DNA of 64,000 bases from Amoeboaphelidium protococcarum X5 (taxonomy: Eukaryota > Fungi > Aphelidiomycota): NCBI GenBank assembly GCA_023515725.1, contig JALDTO010000162.1, positions 410,476-474,475 of the forward strand. Reading direction: 5' to 3'. Below are positions 32,201-43,702 of this stretch, in pieces. The position numbers were made by a program, and so were the translations under genes. Below the pieces are notes generated by a model. The model made no database searches. It was not told where the DNA came from and saw nothing but the letters and a program-made list of their open reading frames with translations. How positions within the stretch are numbered: the first letter of the stretch is position 1; the number at the start of each line of letters is the position of its first letter.

Positions 32201-35200
32201 GTCAATGTACATCTAAGCCGCATCATGATCATCCCTCTTTATAGCCAAAATCACTTTGAAAAAGGTGGCATCAGGAGAATCTGGTTTCATAAACTGAACA
32301 TAATCATCCATCAACTGCCATTACTTGAGACCCCATGCGGCGGCAGTCGCTAGTGGCGATAAAGTTCTCTTTGTTGAATCGTCCACGACATAAAATTACT
32401 ATTGGGCAATATCGTTCAGTTTATCCCACTCACCTAGCGCATGTAAACATCTCAATCTTCCCAGTACAATACTAGGATTCTTCTTTATGTCTGCACTATC
32501 ACTCTTCTCGTATGACTCCAATGCAAGATCCCAGCGCTGCAAACTCTCATACCAAGCCTCTTTCAACTCCATATTGTGCTTTTGCTGCACAAACTTCAAC
32601 AGACCGGTCGCACTATCTGGTTACTGTAGCTAATTATTAATTGATATCAGAGCTTCTACAGTCTCTGGCAATGGATCATTGATAAACTCATTCTCCTTCA
32701 TGTGCAAAGCCTTGGCATAAGCATGAAACTTGGCGGCAACATTACCGAGCAGCTTTGAGTCTATAGGCAGAATTTTCTCATCGTGCTCCATGAACTCAGT
32801 CAAATTCAAAAGGATTTAAACCACCTCAGGAGGAACTGTAGGGGAGGTGAGAGCACTTTCAATTGCCCGCACCAATTCGTCTTACAACTAATCATACAAC
32901 TCACTCCAACATGAAGTGAAAGCAGCATTAAAAAGCCAACTAGCAAGGGGATGATAAGAACTTGCAAGACTTGCACAGGCTCTCAATGCATGCGATGGAG
33001 ACTCTTTAAGCAGTTCCACCGATAATCTACGCAGCCACTCCTACCAATCCTCTTTCGCTGAGCGTTGACCCGTCTCCCACGCCTTCTTTAAATGCATCTA
33101 ATTCACAGGAAGCTTCTTGGTAAGATTAGAGTCCGCAACAGATACATCTTCTGTATTTTAATCATTATCAGCATCAGCTCCGAACTCTTGAGGCAGCGGT
33201 TCCTTCTTTATCAATTTCTATACAAGAAGCGTATAATTAGGATGGACAATACGCTGCTACTTCAGAATCTTATTAATGGATGGCACAAACACAACAAAGT
33301 TCAGCCTCAACTAATACATGACGGCACACAGGGCATCAATCACGGGCGTCTTCAATTCTGCAACTGTATTAGGAGATAACAATATACGCTCCATCGAATG
33401 AACAATCCTGGCAGCATACTCTTAAATATTCGCATTCTTTGACAGCTTCCCAATACTTACAATGCAAGATTTTCTCAGCATTATAGGCTCATCCTCCTTC
33501 TCGGCGCATTATAACAAAGCAGGCATAATCAGACTTAAATAGTCCTCCACACTGGAGCCAAAAACAACGAGAGCGTGTAAAACTTTAAGTGCGACAGCAC
33601 GTCTTTCCGACCTGTCCACCTCGAGCATCTGCAGCATATGGCCAAGTAACTTTGGTAAATAGATGCGAAACTCCGTGTCCAACGCCATAGCAATAGACTC
33701 AATGAGAGTGAGAATAGTGAGCTGGACATTTCCATTCGGTCCCCAATACAATTTAACCATATCTAAAATGTCAACCAAATAGTTCCGGATATGCTATTTA
33801 ACAACACTGACCAGTGCTCCAAGTTGCTGAATATAAAACTCTAGCAGGCCTTGAGGAGCATTGCGCATCATGGTCAAGAACGGTGGCATAATAATAGGCA
33901 GCAGAGAAACGCTCTTGAAGCCAAGAGACTTGATAATGTAAATAAGACCTTAGATCACGGCAGTGTGATGAACAGTAAGTGTAGAATCATTAAGGATTTT
34001 AATCAAAGAGTTCACCGCAATCTATGAGTAGTAATCTTCGTTCTGGGAAGGAGTTTGTAATTACAGAGCATCAACCTCAGCCATACTACGCAAGTCCACA
34101 GCATCCTCAATGCTATTCTGATTCATACGATGTCGATACGGATCTAGTGCTCCCAAAATACCAAGAACACGCATAGTCTATATTCTAATTGAATGCACAG
34201 ATTCGGATTAGAGGATGTTGAGTAATAGAGGCAGCAATTGAGGGTGTTGGAAATAAGGTTACACAACATAAGGACAGTTGGCAGCAATCTATCCAAGACA
34301 TTTCAGAGCTGATTCACGTTTACCAACAGAAGACTGATCTTGAATAGTATCAATAAGCACAGGCATCAACTGCGGCAGATACTTTGCCATACTCTCTCGG
34401 CCGATGGCAGCAAGTTCTCCAATGCTCAGCATGATTTGAGCCGACACGCTGGGAGATGGATCACCAACTTTCAACAGCAGATTATCCATCATCGGGCCAA
34501 CATACGGTTTAATCAAACGTTAACAAGCCGTAATCAACAACGACAATAACGTGGCACTTTCCTCCTTAGACTTGGACACATTCGAGTATTCAAGATCGGA
34601 CATGAGGCGCAGAAATACCTTTCGCAGACTTGGCATTATATGAGCAGGATTGTAAAGCGTCAAGCGACCAATGATATCAACGCATAAACTTCTCACCTCC
34701 CAGTCTTCATCATTTAGAGCAAAGAATAAAGAATTGATAAACTCCTTGCTCGAGAGTAAAATATCTAATTCCTGAGAGATGTTGGACAAAATAACACGCC
34801 TAATCGTCACGTCTGGATCTCCAACAGCAATGTTGACCAGCTTATGCAAAATAACTTTGTACATGGACTTCATATTGGAATTACTCTTATACTCTAAAGG
34901 ATCATTCTCCATTATTTTCAATGCACAAATTGAAGCAGAACGTCGCAGTTCATTAATATCGTCATCAAGATATGCCAAAACCACATCCTTCGCAAAGTGA
35001 GTCAAAGTGTAAGACTTGAAATTGAACTCTGACAATACATTAAATGCAGCAACAAACAGATCCACATTCTTATCCTCTTGTACAATCACCATACGCAAAT
35101 TTGACGCCATCATAGCAAGAGGCGCCACACTTAGAGAACCAGCAGGCCGAAATGGAGATCCTGAGAGCGTCATAGAGACAAGATTAAGCATTTACACCTG

Positions 35201-36520
35201 AAGATAATGCAACAGTTGGGGCACATTCTCAGCAATCACAGCCAACGATGTCCTCAATGCATCACTAAGACCACAACTGAGCATCAACTCTGTGAGTTCT
35301 CGTAAATCCTTGACAATACTCTGACCGACCGCCTGTGATAACATGGCTACAAAATGAAATACGGCAGCTATATCAGCAAAATTCTTACTTCTTCCACGAA
35401 CACTCAACGACTCTTTAGCGGATGCTATGAGCTGAGGTAGATACTAAGTGATTGAAGACTAAACAGCAACACAAATACCACCACAGCTGTTAAATGCCGC
35501 CACCTTGTCTTTATCCTTCTTCAAATGCCCAACCAGATAGGACATTGCAGATGCAAGATAATTACTCACAAACGCATCCGGTTTGAATGACGCAAGCAAC
35601 GGCAATACTGTCATAACAGACTTGCGAATGAGCATATCCTTATTGTCCTTGTGCTTCAGCACCAGATCACATAGTTCGACGTAATGCTGATTCAAGCCAT
35701 CGTTAGAGAACTTCAACATTGACTCCAAAACCAACAGACTCGCATGCACACTTTCAATACTAGAACTTTTGAATCCTTTCAAAGTCTCATCAACCAGTCT
35801 AGTATACCACTTAGCCTTAAATCCCTCCTCGCGATCCCGAGTAGATGTAATGACGCAGCTCAAACATTCGGCGGCACTCTCCCTGATTGCCTGTTTGACA
35901 TCTCTCAGAGGATACCATATTAATTCCACAATTTGATTCGTATAAGCATATAGGAGGGTAGGTGCAGATAAGGTCAACTCATGTAAAACACAAACAGCTG
36001 CAAATCGCTTATGCTCCATCCTCTCACCAGTTATCCACTCAATACATCGACCAACCTCGAAATCAACAAATTCCGCCGTCAGAGTACCACCATACTAAGC
36101 CAAATTACCCAAAGCCTTGGCAGCCAGAACAATAATTTAAGTCTCCACATTATTCCCACCAATTCCACTACCACTGCCGCCACCAGAACCAGGAATGACA
36201 TTTCGCAAATAGTTGGCAAAGCGAGCCACCTTGGTACCAGTCTCCTCGCCCTCGACCTCAATACTGGCCAGAGCTTCAATACATACAACACCACACAACT
36301 TTTCATTAAGATCATTGGAATGAATAAACTCGAATATTTTCCTGTTAATATCATTCATAAACTTGGTGAACTGATCCCCACTCAGCTCTCGACTAACATT
36401 TATGGCGTGCCTCTTCAACCGCTCAGCACTCTTCTACTAATCTCCACCAATCGAGGCACTACTCATTTCTGCAAATATTTTACTCAGAGTATCCACATAC
36501 TACGCAGCCACCATTGCCAT
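29273..36520 (-). CDS. TOR: Target of rapamycin kinase, ~2415 aa, apparently intronless
   Basis: HEAT and FAT regions; [21 protein letters not shown]; kinase [34 protein letters not shown]; [15 protein letters not shown] then TGA. All fragments are in one frame. Confidence 0.97.
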
Positions 36521-37172
36521 CCCTATTATAATGATGATATTTAATTTGAAATCAAGTAATAATCAGATGAGTGTGAATGAAAGAGTGATTACGCAACAGA
36601 GTTCTGACAGAGATGTTTAAGATAAGGAAAGGAGAAAATAACGAACGAGGAAGAACGACGCGACAGAAGTTTTGACTGAATGCAACACTGGCCAAGTGTC
36701 GATCAGAACGATTAGATAATTGCTTTGTAAGTAAGGTGAGTGAGTGTTAATACAATGAACTTGATCTACTAATGCAAAGTGAAGAGTCTAAATCTGTCGC
36801 TACCCATACACACACTTCAATTAAGGCGAGTAGTCTTTATATGGTAAATTGCATCTTGCTTAAAACCAAATTTTTGAATTCAGAATCAAAGCGATTTACT
36901 ACACACTATACATGGTAGGAGATACACTCTTTAAATCGCTGACTGATTTGGTTGAGCTTAATGTTGCAGCGTTGTTTACAGCTCACTTTTTAATTGCAGG
37001 GATCAATTGATCATCAGTGAATGAGATCGGTTTCAAGTCTTACAGATCACGCTGATTTCCTTTTCGCTCTTCTTCTCTCTCAAAACGATCGTTCTTCTTT
37101 TCTTCCTAATCTCTCACTCTGGCCGTTCTCATTATTACATTTTAACACTGATAATTTTAGAACAGAGTTGAA

Positions 37173-39983
37173 ATGTCAATCTGGGATAGACTGAATACTA
37201 TTTAAAATTACGGAACTTAGCTCTTGGAATCTACAGAGCAGATTGCTAAAGAGATTTTGCCTCTGGATGATCCTAATGATAGCAATGTCAAGAATTAGTA
37301 GTAGCCTGGTGGTAGTAGTAATAGTAGGAGAAAGAATACATTTTTGAGTAATTTTATTGATACTAACGACTATGGATTCACGGATACCTCTCTGTCTCCT
37401 CCCACTACTGGTTATAAGAAGTAGGAGGAGGATAAAGCTGTTAATGGTGATCAGGAAGAGAAATCTGATATGGGAGATTTTAGCTCTAATAATCGTCAGT
37501 TGGACAGCGGTGCTGTGGAAGCAAGTAGAAACTTTGATGCATCAAATTAAGCTACTGCTTAGTAATAATTTCCATAGTAGGTGAGATACTAGGAAGACTC
37601 ACCTTAAAGGCGCTAGTAATTGTTTGCTACTCCGTAATAGACTCAGCTTGATCTGGCTTCAGGTGATCAAGTGCAAGAGATAGAATTCCTGTTAAAGTAG
37701 AAGGAGGAGGAAATTGAAGAGTTGCAGTAGGCACTGGTGGATAATTAGCTCAAAGTCAAGACTGCTTAGGAGTAGATTGATAGAATGGACTCCGAGATTT
37801 CTTAGTTGAGAGTGCAATAGTAGCTGGCGGAGTAGTTGCAGATTTAACTATAATAAAAAGACAGTCTGATATAGAAGTTGTAGAATGGCAGTCAGGCTGG
37901 TAGTAGAAAAAACTCAGATTTAGCTTCGCCTTAGTAATCTTTACACTCTCCTTCTTAATGGCAAGTTGGAAGTACCTCTGTATCTGAAGGTACTGTCGGT
38001 CTCAATGTTTAAGAACTACAGCATCGCAATTAATAGTTATAGTCGACTTTAGACCATTTGAAAGTTCGCGCCAAGTAAAAGATTGCAGAGTTATAGGCTT
38101 AGTTGAAGTAAGCACAGGAGCAGTCTGCACCAGTCTCTCCTTAGTAGTAATCGCAAAATCTGCAGCAGGTTGTGCATTAGAAAGATTAAGAAATTGCTGA
38201 ATTGAAAGAAGAATTGAAAAAGGCCAGTACGTAGTTATAAGAGACTGCAGATAAGAATATGGCGGCCAGTAATTCATCTTTATCTCGTGGAGATCTCAGT
38301 ACTGATGAGCAAGTGTAGAAATTGCAGTAAAAATTGTAATTCAAAGATTCTGAATTAGTCAGATTAACTGCTGATTTGAAAAAGTTCTAAGCTTTGGTTG
38401 CGCAGATGAAGAAGATGAAAACGAGAATTGAAGAGTAGCAGGAGATGTTGAAGGCCAAAGATGAGTAGATTTCTATGCTCTCCACTCAATCATCAGTAAG
38501 TAGCAATAATTAGTAAAATGGTGTCGATTAGGCAGCTTTGAATGAAAAAAATTAATTGATCGATGCTTTAAAGTAATAGATTGACGGTCTGCATAAGACA
38601 AATTCGACGTTGCCGTTGAAGGAAGAGGAGATTAGATCTTTAAAGAGAAGCGTGGCTGAGTACAAGACTAATTTAGAAGATTTATAAAGTCAGTTTGCTG
38701 AATAGTAGGAGCAGTTGGAAGAGCGTTAATAGGAGATTAACAAGTTGCGGGATGATCTTAAATATGCTGATAATAGTCAGAGCTCCCGATTGTCTGAGTT
38801 GCAATTAGAAAATTAAAAGTTGAAGAGTTAAATTGAGGAGCTGAGGGCATAAATTGAAGAATTAAGTGGTATTTAATCCAAGTACTCTGATAGTCAGGCA
38901 GACAGTGAGAGAGTAAGAACTTAGCTTGAAAATGCTTAGTAAAAGGTTGAAGAATTGTAGCAGTAATGTTAACTTTTGCAATAGTTTGAATAGAATTGCG
39001 AGCAATTGACATCTCAAGTAGGCGATTTAAAAGGACTTAATTCGCAACTGACCAGTTAAGTAGAAGAATTATCTGAAAAGCTGGACTCTGCTGAGAGAGA
39101 GAAAGCCACGGCTGAATAACAATTGTCTCAACTGCAACTCCAAGTCGATTAATTGGATTCTGATAAGTAATCAGAGTTGGCCGAGTATGTTGTCAAATGT
39201 GAGGATTTGTAAAAGCAGCTGTCTGACGGTGAGTTTAAGCAGTAATAGTTATAAACTAGAATAAGCAGTGTTGAAGAGGAGATTCAGGAGGTACAGAGAT
39301 AGAGAGATGATTTACGGGCGGAACTGGACGGCTTTGGGTAAAATAGTGCTCAAGAGAAAGAGTACCTAGAGTAGAAGTCCAAGTCTTTATCAAATCAATT
39401 ATCATAATAGTCTTAATAATTGCAGTCTGCTGATTAGGAAATTAGCCAACTCAAAGGATAGATTTATGAGTTGGAATCCCAATTGAAAACGTTACAACAA
39501 TCTGGTGCTATCACTTAGAATCATTTGGATAGAGTTACGGATGATTGGCGCTCCAAACTTGCTGATATGGAGTAGAATAACATGCGACTGTTGGATAGAA
39601 CCTTGAGAGCAGAGAGACAACTCGCGAATTATGAGAATGAAAGCCGCAATGCATCTGCAGGTTTGAGTAGAAGTGGGAGCAATTTCATGCAGGGTGTGGA
39701 TACTTTTAGCTGGCTCTAGACTAAAGAGGAAGATGATATCGATAGTGATGGTGCCGACTTGGAATCCGTGTCGCGTGGCAGTCTTATGCCTAGAGGAGGT
39801 GACGTTATGAGCAAAGTGAAATTTTATACACGCTTCTATGTTCGCAAGTCTATGCGGTTGATTGATCGAAAGACTGTTCAGGCTGGCATGTATCTCAAAG
39901 ACAATGCCATGGTGCGTATATGCGCTGTTGGTTATCTCGTCTTCATACAGATCTACCTACTCATGAAGATTATTGGACTTTGA
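37173..39983 (+). CDS. Long Gln-rich coiled-coil, tail-anchored golgin (golgin-84/GOLGA5-like), ~936 aa
   Basis: N-terminus MSIWDRL...LLE, extended heptad region, and C-terminal IDRKTVQAGMYLKDNAMVRICAVGYLVFIQIYLLM, which resembles the golgin-84 juxtamembrane/TM segment. Almost invisible in the standard code because TAA/TAG are dense. Confidence 0.7.
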
Positions 39984-40197
39984 ATCATGCATTGAGAATT
40001 TGCATATTGAATTGCGACACGAATGTATGACATGAAAGATAGGAAGTCACCCTTAATGGTCTTATATTTCAATTCATCATTATTATACTTGGTTACTTGA
40101 TCTGCTTCAAGCAAAATTATCCCAATAGTCAATTATTTATTGCCATTATTATCATCATCTTCTTCATCAACTTGGCAGTTCTACTCCCTTCTATTAT

Positions 40198-41352
40198 TCA
40201 CCAATGTTCTTCGTGCTCAAACGCGAGCGGAACTCTGACTCCATACCAAATAGCACGCATCAATTTTTTCTAGTTATAAGTGAACTCGCGAAGACAGTCA
40301 TCATCGAGATAACTCATGTAGTTGTGGATAGGTTAAAAGTTGAAAAAATCACAACTCCTAAATTGAGAACAAGTACGGCTATCAAAGTGCGAGTACTTGA
40401 ACTCAGATGGAGTATCGTCTTGGACACCATACACTTCCCTATACTGCTGAGGAAAGTCGGTCTAATCGCAGCTATCGGTGTACGTGTGGAGCAGTCCAAG
40501 CCAATGACCAACTTCATGCACAAGAGTCTTTCCTTGAGTGTACTGCAGAAATGGAATGTTTGAATACCAATTCTATATGCCAGGCAGAGTTTGCCAATCC
40601 AACACAATACCATCAACCTGGCGCTTTGCTCGATCGTGAACCAAATCTTGAGGATACACAGCGGCGACACCCATCTTCTCAGAGGCTTCGATTTGAGTAA
40701 TATAAATGTTCAGATCTTTCACTGTACCACGACGGTAAGCCTTCAACATATCTCTTAGCTCAGTCTGAATCCGCGGATTAACAGATCCAGAGCCATCATC
40801 GTAATCGTTCATGCTGATCTGCACTGAAGCAAATTGATCATCAGTGATCACTCGGGCATCAGCAATTACGAATTGAATATTAGCCGGTCTAAACGCATTG
40901 TTCAGCTCCTATACCTATGGCACTATGACTTGAGCATCAGGACAGAAGCTATGACGAGCACAGAATACATGCAAGTACGTGTTGATGTAAATCATTTCAT
41001 TGTAGTCTTACACCGACCTCTTTACCAAATTTTGAGATTAACCGGCAGATTACTGAGATGAAGCCTGACACTTGGGTGCCTATGAAGTTGGCAGTTGAGG
41101 CAGATGTAGACTTTCCACCGAGACATTACGCGGAGTTGTATGTGCAGTATCATTTGAGCTCTTCAGCCAGCCAGCCACAATCTTGTCATCAATTTTCTTT
41201 TTCAATAGCGAGCCACCACATCTATCTTTTTATTACTACGCAGATTGTGGATTTGACGCGTCTAAAGGCTTTGCTACAACCCCATTGAGGAGTAGACGGA
41301 GTATAATCATGGCTAATATTGTAAACCTGGAGAATTTATTCCATTGGGTCAT
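40198..41352 (-). CDS. Secreted M43 (pappalysin/ulilysin-like) zinc metalloprotease, 384 aa
   Basis: Signal-like N-terminus, prodomain Cys motif [25 protein letters not shown], Met-turn [19 protein letters not shown] at 40198-40200. Confidence 0.9.
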
Positions 41353-42362
41353 CTATAAATCCATCTTCTAATTTATCTATCTATCCTTAGTGCAGTGGTC
41401 GATCGAAACAAGATCAATTGAATCAGCTGTAATAACTCTAAGCGGTTACTAGTGATGGCAATTGTGTGTGTGAGTGTGTAATAACTAAAATATACAAAAT
41501 CTATGTGGACTATAAAATTTAATGCCAATCCGATACTCAGCAAAGAAGATGCAACACTCAGCACCAAGGTCAGTTGCAGACTCTTCAGCTTTTCCATTGA
41601 CACTGCAGCGTGAGCGATAATCATTGGCCAATCTATTCTGACACGGTTACACCGATTAAGCAGTACTTCCGCGTGAACATTGTATTAGAGTTACACAAGC
41701 TACAGCCCACATCGACAGCTATAAATCGCTAAATTCTTTGTCATCAATGGTGCAATGAGAATTTCGAAAGATTTACTGTATAAGCAAATTTAGCTAGATG
41801 TTTCATGAGCGAACGTGTAGAATCTTCCCACGGTTAAACACAATTGTGAAATTCGCGAACACTACACTACTTGTACCGTAGTTAGGAGTTTTGCTATAGG
41901 CAGATATTTATTAAGAAAACTATAAAATGCCAACAAAAGCTTGATCGCAATTTTGTTCAATGTCCTGACAATGAAAAAGACTTTGTTCTATTTGACCAAT
42001 GATGACAGTAAAACTTTATTCAAACGTGTTCAATCTTCACCGAACAACTCAGGTTCAAACAACAAAATTCCGGATCTTTTATTGATTACTTTGAATCATA
42101 AAAACACGATGTAAAAACAAGCTTTAAAATTTTTGGAATCTTTATACAAAGGCTGCTTTAATGGAAAATCGTCTGCGTTTCATTATTTGTGATATGGAAT
42201 GTCTGAAAGTAGTCTATCTGTGAAGTAGTGTCTTCAGCCGCTGGAACTAAGAAGGCTTATAGAAGATTATCTGTATATATATTGCAAATCTCCCTAAATA
42301 GATGCTACTTCTTGATGCAGTAATACGATTCAATTTTTCGTCCTGAATTCTAAATTAACTAG

Positions 42363-42836
42363 CTGGTGAGACGCAAGCGTAGGCGGTTAGGACTGCCTAG
42401 ACTAGGTGATAATGTTAAGCGAGCTTGGCGCGGGAATTTGTGCTCGTTCTCTTAGGATGTGGAGAAAGCAATGACTGTATCTGAAGTGCTTCCACTTCCG
42501 TGCAAGGATTTGAGTGACTATCTGTATGTTCATTTGGTTGGCTCGGATGTTCCTGCTCATATTACCCAGCAGGGCTTACCAAAATTGCTCCATCTACGCC
42601 GAGCTGTGATCAGGGACGCGTTAGTGTAGACTATTTGAGAGGATGTTTGAGACGCTTTTTCCGTATGGATGTGGAGGATTCAAGGAAGCTGACCTTTTAA
42701 ATTGAAGTTCGGGTTACTTAATTGTTAGAATCTGATTCAACGTGCTAATTTCGTAACCATTATTCATTTTGTTTTGTAGCTTTCAACATGCTGCAGAGAC
42801 ATGAGCTGAATGAATTCGTCAGTTACCGTATTCGTG
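42363..42836 (+). mobile_element. Decayed, internally deleted Helitron Rep fragment (DUF6570-like and Helitron_like_N-proximal motifs)
   Basis: Three consecutive frames give WRGNLCSFSQDV...LPLPCKDLSDYLYVHLVG...LHLRRAVIRDALV, then MFETLFPYGCGGF, then FRNHYSFCFVAFNMLQRH. These match, in order, Helitron Rep/Hel N-terminal motifs. Frameshifts and TGA stops indicate a relic. Confidence 0.75.
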
Positions 42837-43222
42837 TTGAAGAAGAAGATTACCAACCTGGCATGTTGGATGAATTGGCAAAAGATAGCTGAACTGCAAG
42901 GTGGACAAGCAACTACAGTACTGTTATTTTTACTTTGCACAAGACGACGCGTAAACATTTTAATGAATTTTAGCCCCTATTAAATTTTCGACATAAGCTG
43001 ATTGCAATGGCGCAGACAGACTATCAGTTGGTAGGAAAGCGTGTCTTAATTACTACAGAGGAATTCACGTCCAAGTAGCATCAATTTAAGAGTACCCTTA
43101 ATTCTTAACTTGGCGGTTAAAAAAAAGTATTTGTACTCGATGTGTTCTCTGGTCTGCATGACAATGTCGGAGCATATAATGTTATGTTACGTGCAGTAGT
43201 TTTGCTAAAGGTGAAGTCATGA
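42836..43222 (+). mobile_element. Fanzor/TnpB-like nuclease C-terminal remnant (IS607-TnpB/Fanzor2-type RuvC region), pseudogenised
   Basis: LKKKITNL / LDEL...ARW.SNYSTVI...LHKTTRK...FRHKLIAMAQ...VLITTEEFTSK...LGGQKKVF...HDNVGAYNVMLR then TGA. This follows the pattern KI.NLVDELH..A.WL..NY..I ... FRQRL..KA ... TEEYTSK ... LGG.K.F ... RD.NGA.NI.LR. Internal TGA at 42890. Confidence 0.72.
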
Positions 43223-43702
43223 TAGATTCTGGTAGTATTAAATTGCCTGTTTAGTAATAAAAATTTGATTAAGTAGCATGTTCAATCTCTTTGAGTACGA
43301 CAATCATACTTGAGTGAAAGTTTCAGCTATGATCAAATCAACATAAAAAGTGCTGCAGAAGACCTATGAATTTGCGTAAATTGATATTGAGTTCCTGTCG
43401 ACGCTCCGTGTATTTTCTAATACCCTGGCTGAATATATCATCAGACGTACGTTCTACTGAAAGTGCGCCTTTGAACGCTTAACCACTCTTCCGGCCAATA
43501 CCCGGGAACCAACCACTTAACTGACGAGATCAAACTTGGCCAGATCTTGACGTGTTTCAACTTTGCGAAGATGATCTTTAGTGATTTAATCAAGTTGCAG
43601 CACCATAGTGCTAGATGATATGTATTGTCAAATAAATAAATAACTAAAACAGATCTCACAAAATTTTTGATGAATTTCTCATTTCAACATTCCCAAATTC
43701 AT

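Follow-up and report, generated by a model that had tools for sequence, protein, structure and literature searches.

Positions 42112-43484 of a 64,000-nucleotide stretch of the genome of the aphelid Amoeboaphelidium protococcarum X5 (assembly GCA_023515725.1, contig JALDTO010000162.1, positions 410,476 to 474,475 of the forward strand; the whole stretch is called the window from here on) hold the decayed relic of a Fanzor element, 5'-truncated and frameshifted, whose parent was about 3 kb long and bounded by terminal inverted repeats. Fanzors are the eukaryotic members of the TnpB family. In all likelihood a non-autonomous DNA transposon with the Fanzor as its single gene left this dead copy, which lacks its 5' part and has a scrap of a Helitron nested within it (Table 1, where residues are numbered on the intact relative P0001). 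The TnpB/Fanzor homology, the catalytic motifs, the ends of the element, its target-site duplication and the nesting are shown; the relic itself is inert, neutral debris without present function. An initial annotation of positions 42363-43330 had described a Helitron relic running directly into a nuclease remnant of Fanzor2/IS607 type, an observation that is partly confirmed and an interpretation that is partly supported by what follows.

Table 1. Parts of the Fanzor relic and of the sequence nested in it, in window positions
Feature	Position	Strand	Content
Fanzor relic, segment A	42112-42416	+	about residues 524-604 of P0001, including NRCYFLMQQYDSIFRPEF and LVRRKRRRLGLPRL
Nested internal fragment of a Helitron open reading frame	42417-42929	+	frameshifted, without Helitron termini
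Fanzor relic, segment B	42930-43233	+	residues 620-716 of P0001
Decayed end of the open reading frame, 3' untranslated region and right end of the element	43234-43484	+	ends in ..GAACGCTTAACC

Searching the genome at the DNA level with the interval found few relatives, on C154, C179, C17, C192 and C249 (numbers with C, L and P denote genomic sequences, loci and proteins, respectively). The C179 copy has an open frame of 762 codons under translation table 6, and its public counterpart is the protein P0001 (738 aa), which was recovered at 100% identity by phmmer with a 172-aa stop-free piece; the same query also found P0002, a gene model of a sister family, and distant homologues from metagenomes and the chytrid Borealophlyctis. 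The central and C-terminal parts of the C179 frame read ...HNRICNFLLRQYDLIILPEFQTSKMVRRKRKRLGLPRLVGDD...ITLHKTTRKNLLAFSHYKFRHKLVAMSQ...RVLITTEEFTSKQHPF...LRDNVGAYNVMSRS. A. protococcarum reads UAR as glutamine (PMC5304391), and the 741-codon genic part of the C179 frame contains 27 in-frame TAR codons (13 TAA and 14 TAG) and no TGA. At the glutamine of the Helitron motif CSF.QD, the window, its C154 homeologue and the independent C249 copy all have TAG. The claims that both parts were written in the TAR=Gln code, and that intact Fanzor genes exist elsewhere in the genome (C179/P0001 and the sister family), are thereby borne out; that mining with the standard code would miss the whole family was overstated, as NCBI holds correctly translated, unnamed proteins.

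Both Fanzor segments of the relic can be placed on this intact gene. Segment A is 72% identical to the C179 copy over 42112-42413 (blastn), and its match to L056, a second copy described below, spans 42112-42416. In tblastn searches, residues 524-615 of P0001 align to window positions 42174-42446 (E 2.8e-10) and residues 620-705 to 42932-43195 (66% identity over 88 aa, E 2.3e-28). The 5' two thirds of the element, which would lie left of 42112, are missing. Segment B contains LHKTTRK, FRHKL, the alternative catalytic Glu in TTEEFTSK (43057-43075), a linker without zinc-finger Cys, and the RuvC-III motif as HDNVGAYNV, with His in place of the usual Arg. It is damaged by an in-frame TGA at 43220 and by a 5-base insertion near 43190, which shifts the frame. 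Further right, 43371-43485 is 72% identical to the 3' end of the C179 copy, and a multiple alignment of element ends places the right end (..CGCTTAACC) at 43484, so that the relic continues for 154 bases beyond 43330, where it had been thought to stop. In intact copies this end is fixed by the empty site described below. The subterminal hairpin and the inverted-repeat core of intact copies are degraded here, the core ACCATAAACGCAC having more than two mismatches. At the other side the feature begins at 42112 and not at 42363, and the first 54 bases formerly given to the Helitron (42363-42416, LVRRKRRRLGLPRL) are internal Fanzor sequence. The peptide MVRRKRKRLGLPRL was first read as an N-terminal start with a nuclear localisation signal; this was rejected, as it is internal and corresponds to residues 587-600 of P0001.

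The Helitron open reading frame (ORF) piece is 513 bp long and lies embedded in the Fanzor reading frame. The intact C179 copy is collinear with window positions 42112-42413 and 42930-43292, and L056 shows the same pattern; because both copies are collinear on either side with only about 40 bp in between, the piece is nested in the Fanzor ORF. It occupies the place of about 40 bp of that ORF (about 44 bp between the matching blocks in the C179 copy). Fanzor homology ends at 42413-42416, and Helitron homology, with C249, begins at 42418. At the insert point no Helitron sequence is found in C179/L053, in L056 or in the L052 family. The Helitron motifs listed in the initial annotation (GNLCSFS(Q)D, LRRAVIRDAL, LFPYGCGG and F.FVAFNMLQRH) and its Fanzor motifs (FRHKL, TEEFTSK, LGG(Q)KKVF and DNVGAYNVMLR) are all present in the frames in which they had been read, spread over three frames in the translation of 42300-43400. 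Both parts of the proposed layout therefore exist; their order, Helitron first and Fanzor second, has to be given up, since the Helitron lies within the Fanzor ORF. The junction between them falls at 42929/42930 instead of near 42836, and DEL..A.W..NY..I, which had been counted as Fanzor, belongs to the insert (42866-42929) and has no counterpart in intact Fanzors.

Within the insert, 42417-42626 represents the second half of a DUF6570 domain, aligned to positions 68-112 of the profile, and is followed by LFPYGCGG (42625-42702) and F.FVAFNMLQRH (42749-42889). The profile match is marginal for the 57-aa piece from the window (E 0.0013; 19.7 bits against a Pfam cut-off of 24.3) and clear in a six-frame scan of the genome for the C154 homeologue (E 1.8e-5) and the C249 copy (E 6.8e-18). 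The C249 Helitron is 82.5% identical to the window in DNA, a likeness confined to 42418-42625. The LFPYGCGG and FVAFNMLQRH pieces are collinear, in one frame, with a Helitron ORF on C207, where they fall between DUF6570 and Rep (shuffle p 0.03 and 0.013, respectively). The Rep domain (Helitron_like_N, PF14214) was found at five places in a genome scan, none of them within the window. Neither helicase nor Helitron termini are found in 42417-42929, and about 170 codons upstream of the Rep domain are all that survives of the Helitron ORF in the window.

The composite proposed in the initial annotation would be an internally deleted Helitron with the Fanzor gene downstream of its Rep-helicase, full versions of which would exist elsewhere. 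In its favour, Helitron and Fanzor share a strand, both junctions keep the adjoining reading frame (for which the chance is about 1 in 9), Helitron-borne Fanzor1 genes in Chlamydomonas include 5'-truncated copies with intact 3' ends (PMC3627910), and in the relic's own subfamily every copy but the intact C179 is likewise 5'-truncated and has kept its 3' end. Fanzor sequence flanks the Helitron piece on both sides, however; three full or near-full copies of the subfamily have inverted repeats and 8-bp duplications and no Helitron sequence, and the Helitron copies on C249 and C207 carry no Fanzor of the relic's family. A 47-aa piece of the insert, searched against the genome, matched only the window and its C154 homeologue and no further Helitron relatives. 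The composite is thus largely refuted by the collinear intact copies, and we consider it very unlikely. Of the intact relatives that it predicted, the Fanzor alone was found: apart from the window, the genome joins the two parts only on C154, a homeologous duplicate, which is the outcome that the initial annotation had itself named as refuting its idea.

C154 matches the whole interval. As this match sits in a block that is 88% identical to the window over 9.4 kb (34032-43296, resuming after 43554), the C154 copy is, judged by sequence likeness, a homeologous duplicate of a region of more than 10 kb and not an independent copy. In the aligned part of the relic the identity is about 82%, against 88% for the block, which fits neutral decay. 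Because C154 shares the insertion of the element, its truncation at 42112 and the Helitron piece, all three predate the divergence of the homeologues. The relic on C154 additionally holds, in its 3' region, a 2.7-kb insertion that is absent from window positions 43297-43553 and encodes an NDC10_II domain (Crypton-type tyrosine recombinase; E 1.1e-11 for an 88-aa piece) at L002:2580-3944 (C154:269456-270820); it was presumably gained after the homeologues split.

The history of the relic can be ordered tentatively on these grounds. The element would have inserted between two host genes before the homeologous copies, now about 88% identical, diverged; its left two thirds would then have been lost; the 513-bp piece of Helitron ORF would have been acquired within the Fanzor frame; and neutral decay would have brought the frameshifts and the in-frame TGA. 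For the third step the likeliest route would be insertion of a Helitron followed by flanking deletions on both sides. Alternatively, the 513 bp may be filler DNA, copied from a Helitron during repair of a break or gap inside the Fanzor element. Such an origin would suit a fragment from inside an ORF that is bounded by no Helitron terminus and replaces about 40 bp of Fanzor rather than merely interrupting it, and the relic on C17/C192, where foreign transposase sequence likewise abuts a truncated 3' part of a Fanzor, offers a parallel. A full insertion with two flanking deletions would leave the same end state, though, and the event is older than the homeologue split, its junctions having since diverged by about 17%. 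We regard filler DNA as a serious but less probable explanation, and prefer insertion followed by flanking deletions.

C17 and C192 match the 3' part only and are homeologous to each other, with flanks 89.5% identical. In this pair of relics (L033:1430-1825 and L034:6162-5797) the Fanzor is 5'-truncated at about residue 666, and it abuts a fragment of a 1029-codon transposase-like ORF (L042:2-3088, C179:86-89 kb) whose likeness to KDZ/Plavaka-type transposases was recognised by eye only. Second copies at about 88-90% identity over several kb are seen at three loci (window 34032-45814/C154, L033/L034 and C286/C264), which suggests two diverged subgenomes, from hybridisation or an old duplication.

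The ORF that hosts the Helitron piece belongs, we conclude, to a Fanzor lineage that has secondarily lost its zinc finger. The identification as Fanzor follows from a chain of matches that leads from the relic to P0001, from P0001 to P0005, a protein encoded on a giant-virus-like contig, and from there to the mimivirus Fanzor2 of PDB 9B0L, and a fold search agrees with it. P0001 matches P0005 with E 4e-37 over 550 aa (BLASTP); P0005, which retains CxxC...CxxC, matches PDB 9B0L (ApmFz2) with E 3.3e-11 and the Pfam domain PF07282 with E 1.9e-5. The structure 9B0L is a ternary complex of mimivirus Fanzor2 (PMC11832414). A profile of the family also matches 9B0L, with E 4.3e-12, in an alignment that pairs NsCsvDPGvR with NSCGIDPGLR and includes the C-terminal RuvC motifs. 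When the AlphaFold model of P0001 was searched with Foldseek, 9B0L ranked first (1.9e-7), followed by TnpB and Cas12f, with SpuFz1 at about 9e-4; every one of the 24 matches at or below E 0.001 is to a structure of TnpB, Cas12 or Fanzor type. Placement of the family as Fanzor2-like is by similarity rank only, ApmFz2 matching far better than SpuFz1, and to that extent the Fanzor2 half of the earlier label can be kept provisionally. The nearest relatives of the aphelid lineage are those from the chytrid and from the giant-virus-like contig; the homologue search with P0001 and the family profile returned aphelid proteins only.

The locus of P0005 (L054; JGI 3300013104, contig Ga0157370_10002347, 22.9 kb) has densely packed small genes and encodes BTB, F-box, KilA-N, SET and Glyco_transf_25 domains, which give it a giant-virus-like look. 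No recombinase gene adjoins P0005 on this contig.

The catalytic motifs DPG, alternative Glu and RD occur in the family in the expected order and spacing. The DPG motif and an alternative Glu beside the zinc-finger position are hallmarks of Fanzors (PMC10711439). RuvC-I reads SVDPGSR in P0001 and VDPGV(R/K) in the sister family, aligned to NSCGIDPGLR of ApmFz2; from the window relic this region is deleted. The alternative RuvC-II Glu, characterised by its place six residues ahead of the first zinc-finger Cys and by a following [TS][TS], is present in TTEEFTSK in the window, in C179 and in the sister family; P0005 has the same Glu, then six residues, then CxxC. RuvC-III reads LRDNVGAYNV in P0001 and YRDNVGSYNV in P0008, aligned to ADRDENAAKNI of ApmFz2. 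None of the four zinc-finger Cys is present in the window, C179, P0008 or P0002, and a genome scan with PF07282 gave 41 hits, none of them at the relic's family. Since the Cys are absent from C179, P0008 and P0002 and present in the outgroup homologues P0005 and P0006, the zinc finger was probably lost secondarily within the family. Elsewhere in the genome, the 41 places matching PF07282 (e.g. L008-L017 and L038-L042) include other Fanzor families, three or more in number, in which the zinc ribbon is retained. One of them is multi-copy, and its ORF, of 581 aa or more, extends past the start of the fetched loci, and another comprises proteins of 976-1165 aa with a large N-terminal extension.

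The carrier of the Fanzor is a cut-and-paste-type DNA transposon, non-autonomous and polymorphic between strains; it is not a Helitron and not IS607-like. At full length it measures about 3.05 kb and has imperfect 22-bp terminal inverted repeats (5'-GGCAGGGGCACCATAAACGCAC ... GTGCGTTTATGGTCGCTAAACC-3'), whose 13-bp core is found exactly at both ends, in opposite orientation, in every full copy. In strain MP228 (GCA_023515745.1) P0001 is the sole gene of the element, between host genes. A second, internally deleted copy lies at another locus of MP228 (L056:4025-6678) and has boundaries identical to those of the P0001 copy. The empty site for L056 is at C286:75390-75397 of the window's assembly, where the left flank can be aligned as far as the base preceding GGCAGG and the right flank from the base following AACC, and the two flank matches overlap by 8 bp. 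Because of this overlap AGAAGAAC is an 8-bp target-site duplication. Duplications of that length fit hAT, P or Zisupton-like elements, among others. The L056 copy is present in MP228, and both homeologous sites are empty in the window's assembly (C286:75390-75397 and C264:~438218-438248); the relic's subfamily has been mobile since the two strains separated, or was removed by excision or loss. Helitrons do not make target-site duplications, and the Fanzor-bearing repeat unit is bounded by GG...CC inverted repeats with the 8-bp duplication and not by 5'-TC/CTRR-3'. The IS607 half of the earlier label is not borne out: IS607-type elements insert without a long target-site duplication, the carrier has the same inverted repeats and 8-bp duplication, and a search of the 23.6-Mb assembly at E up to 1 found no match to the serine recombinase domain (Resolvase, PF00239).

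The sister family is 54% identical to the relic's subfamily over 513 aa without gaps and comprises about 24 copies that are 97-99% identical to one another. All its copies end at one base (L052:1715), at which contigs from four public sequencing runs (of unknown kind, 95-99% likeness) also break. In the same four runs depth is 2-4x higher over the 3' than over the 5' part of the sister element, which is not informative on expression. Isolated fragments of about 80 bp, which correspond to the final 76-85 bases of the 24-copy element and nothing else of it, occur at C68:16251-16326, C44:1-78, C264:1159017-1159102 and C57:290245-290329. Together, these fragments and the 3' depth point to a surplus of right ends that is unexplained for a cut-and-paste element. 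At L052:1705-5251 (C154:389705-393251) the 24-copy element has undergone a tandem partial duplication with a 1778-bp unit, 99.3% identical, in which the second unit begins within the ORF and directly adjoins the first unit's right end, with a GAATCAG microhomology at the joint. Between two copies of the relic's own subfamily dN/dS is 0.5, an uninformative value, one of the copies being deleted.

By analogy with known systems, the parent Fanzor would bind an RNA derived from the conserved 3' stretch of ~150 nt that reaches to the right end, and would cut DNA matching its guide, and the element would be mobilised in trans by a transposase encoded elsewhere. The region corresponding to 43234-43484 would be the candidate template of this omega RNA in the parent element. 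Its last ~70 nt are conserved in both subfamilies, despite a protein identity of only 54%, and include a hairpin, CGTCACTTT-ACTG-AAAGTGCG, immediately ahead of the inverted repeat; a guide RNA of the parent element is conjectural. More tentatively still, RNA-guided nuclease activity without the TnpB zinc finger may survive in the living relatives (P0001 and the sister family with its about 24 copies), which would use the ~150-nt 3' region as guide scaffold and ride on a transposon (terminal inverted repeats, 8-bp target-site duplication) still moving between strains; this is possible, though we do not think it probable.

Several points weigh against our account. No direct sequence match to Pfam or PDB was obtained from the window pieces, the stop-free pieces of the family or P0001 alone: Pfam searches with seven stop-free pieces from the window and with pieces from C179 and L052 gave only the marginal DUF6570 and no TnpB, PDB sequence searches with the 172-aa piece and with P0001 alone gave no match, and a six-frame genome scan with OrfB_IS605 gave none either. 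Look-alikes in the ESM Atlas amounted to weak leads only, a TnpB-related cluster (0.90) and a Cpf1 RuvC (0.91). With direct searches blank, the TnpB assignment passes through intermediate proteins and a low-confidence model, that of P0001 having a pLDDT of 55.6 and TM-scores of 0.16-0.39. The C4 zinc finger, which Bao and Jurka count among the conserved features of TnpB and Fanzor proteins (PMC3627910), is missing from the family, and nuclease activity, read from motifs, is putative. On the Helitron side firm identity is limited to 42417-42626, the matches over 42626-42870 being weak, if collinear, and 42870-42929 being without assignment. For the 3' region Rfam was blank, the fold z-score was only -1.77 and the consensus fold was weak (-2.3 kcal/mol, RNAalifold). 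Both the partner transposase of the non-autonomous element and the way in which the Helitron fragment came to sit there are things that we infer.

Taken at their strongest, these points would make the TnpB/Fanzor likeness a chance resemblance of motifs in an unrelated transposon protein. No family member exceeds the Pfam threshold (OrfB_IS605 scores 24.2 bits against P0002, with a cut-off of 30.5, and does not match P0001 at all), comparison with the genome's other Fanzor families by phmmer and hhalign was not significant, from alignments that were too shallow, and the zinc-finger Cys are absent. Chance would nevertheless have to account for a chain of significant pairwise and profile matches that reaches a solved Fanzor2, for a fold search in which 24 of 24 matches at E up to 0.001 are to TnpB, Cas12 or Fanzor structures, and for three catalytic motifs in proper order and spacing. 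We judge it the least probable of the alternatives and retain the Fanzor assignment.

As ordinary debris the relic itself matters little, and a Helitron-borne Fanzor2 composite is not found at this locus. What it points to is a family of Fanzor transposons without zinc finger, polymorphic between strains, with catalytic motifs, defined ends and an empty site. This lineage of aphelid Fanzors, with intact multi-copy genes in the TAR=Gln code, is not previously described, and no paper linking Amoeboaphelidium and Fanzor was found in the literature. It opens the questions whether the TNB zinc finger is dispensable for RNA-guided cleavage and whether Fanzors help their transposons to persist. If its members were active nucleases, they would show that a Fanzor design without zinc finger occurs in nature, in a host whose TAA and TAG codons stand for Gln.

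Among known systems, the nested piece resembles fungal-type Helitrons with an N-terminal DUF6570, 42417-42626 matching that domain and the motifs that follow being collinear with the C207 ORF, although Rep, helicase and termini are absent in the window. The Helitron-borne Fanzor1 elements CRe-1, 2 and 3 of Chlamydomonas (PMC3627910) are comparable in linking Helitron and Fanzor and in having 5'-truncated copies with intact 3' ends. Unlike in the CRe elements, the Helitron sequence of the window is a scrap from within an ORF, lodged in the Fanzor gene, and the ends of the Fanzor element are inverted repeats with an 8-bp duplication. In its mode of carriage the element agrees with the Fanzor1 genes of eukaryotic DNA transposons (PMC3627910; SpuFz1, 8GKH), with which it shares a single Fanzor gene in a non-autonomous element with inverted repeats and target-site duplications. 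Also shared are a host lineage related to fungi and a long protein with N-terminal additions. SpuFz1 is, however, the weaker structural match (about 9e-4, against 1.9e-7 for ApmFz2), and no sequence match to it was found with the profile at E up to 1 or with single proteins at E up to 10.

The best match in both sequence and fold is ApmFz2, the mimivirus TnpB-like protein L79 (PDB 9B0L). The aphelid proteins differ from it in length (738-745 aa, against 520 for the 9B0L chain, with an N-terminal extension of about 200 aa), in an extra basic segment (MVRRKRKRLGLP...) after LPEF, in the loss of all four zinc-finger Cys, and in their carrier, an inverted-repeat transposon with an 8-bp duplication and not one of IS607 type. 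They share with ApmFz2 the DPG of RuvC-I, the alternative Glu before the zinc-finger position, the LG.SK.Y/F stretch and the RD..A.N of RuvC-III, and P0005, their nearest homologue with an intact zinc finger, is encoded on a giant-virus-like metagenomic contig.

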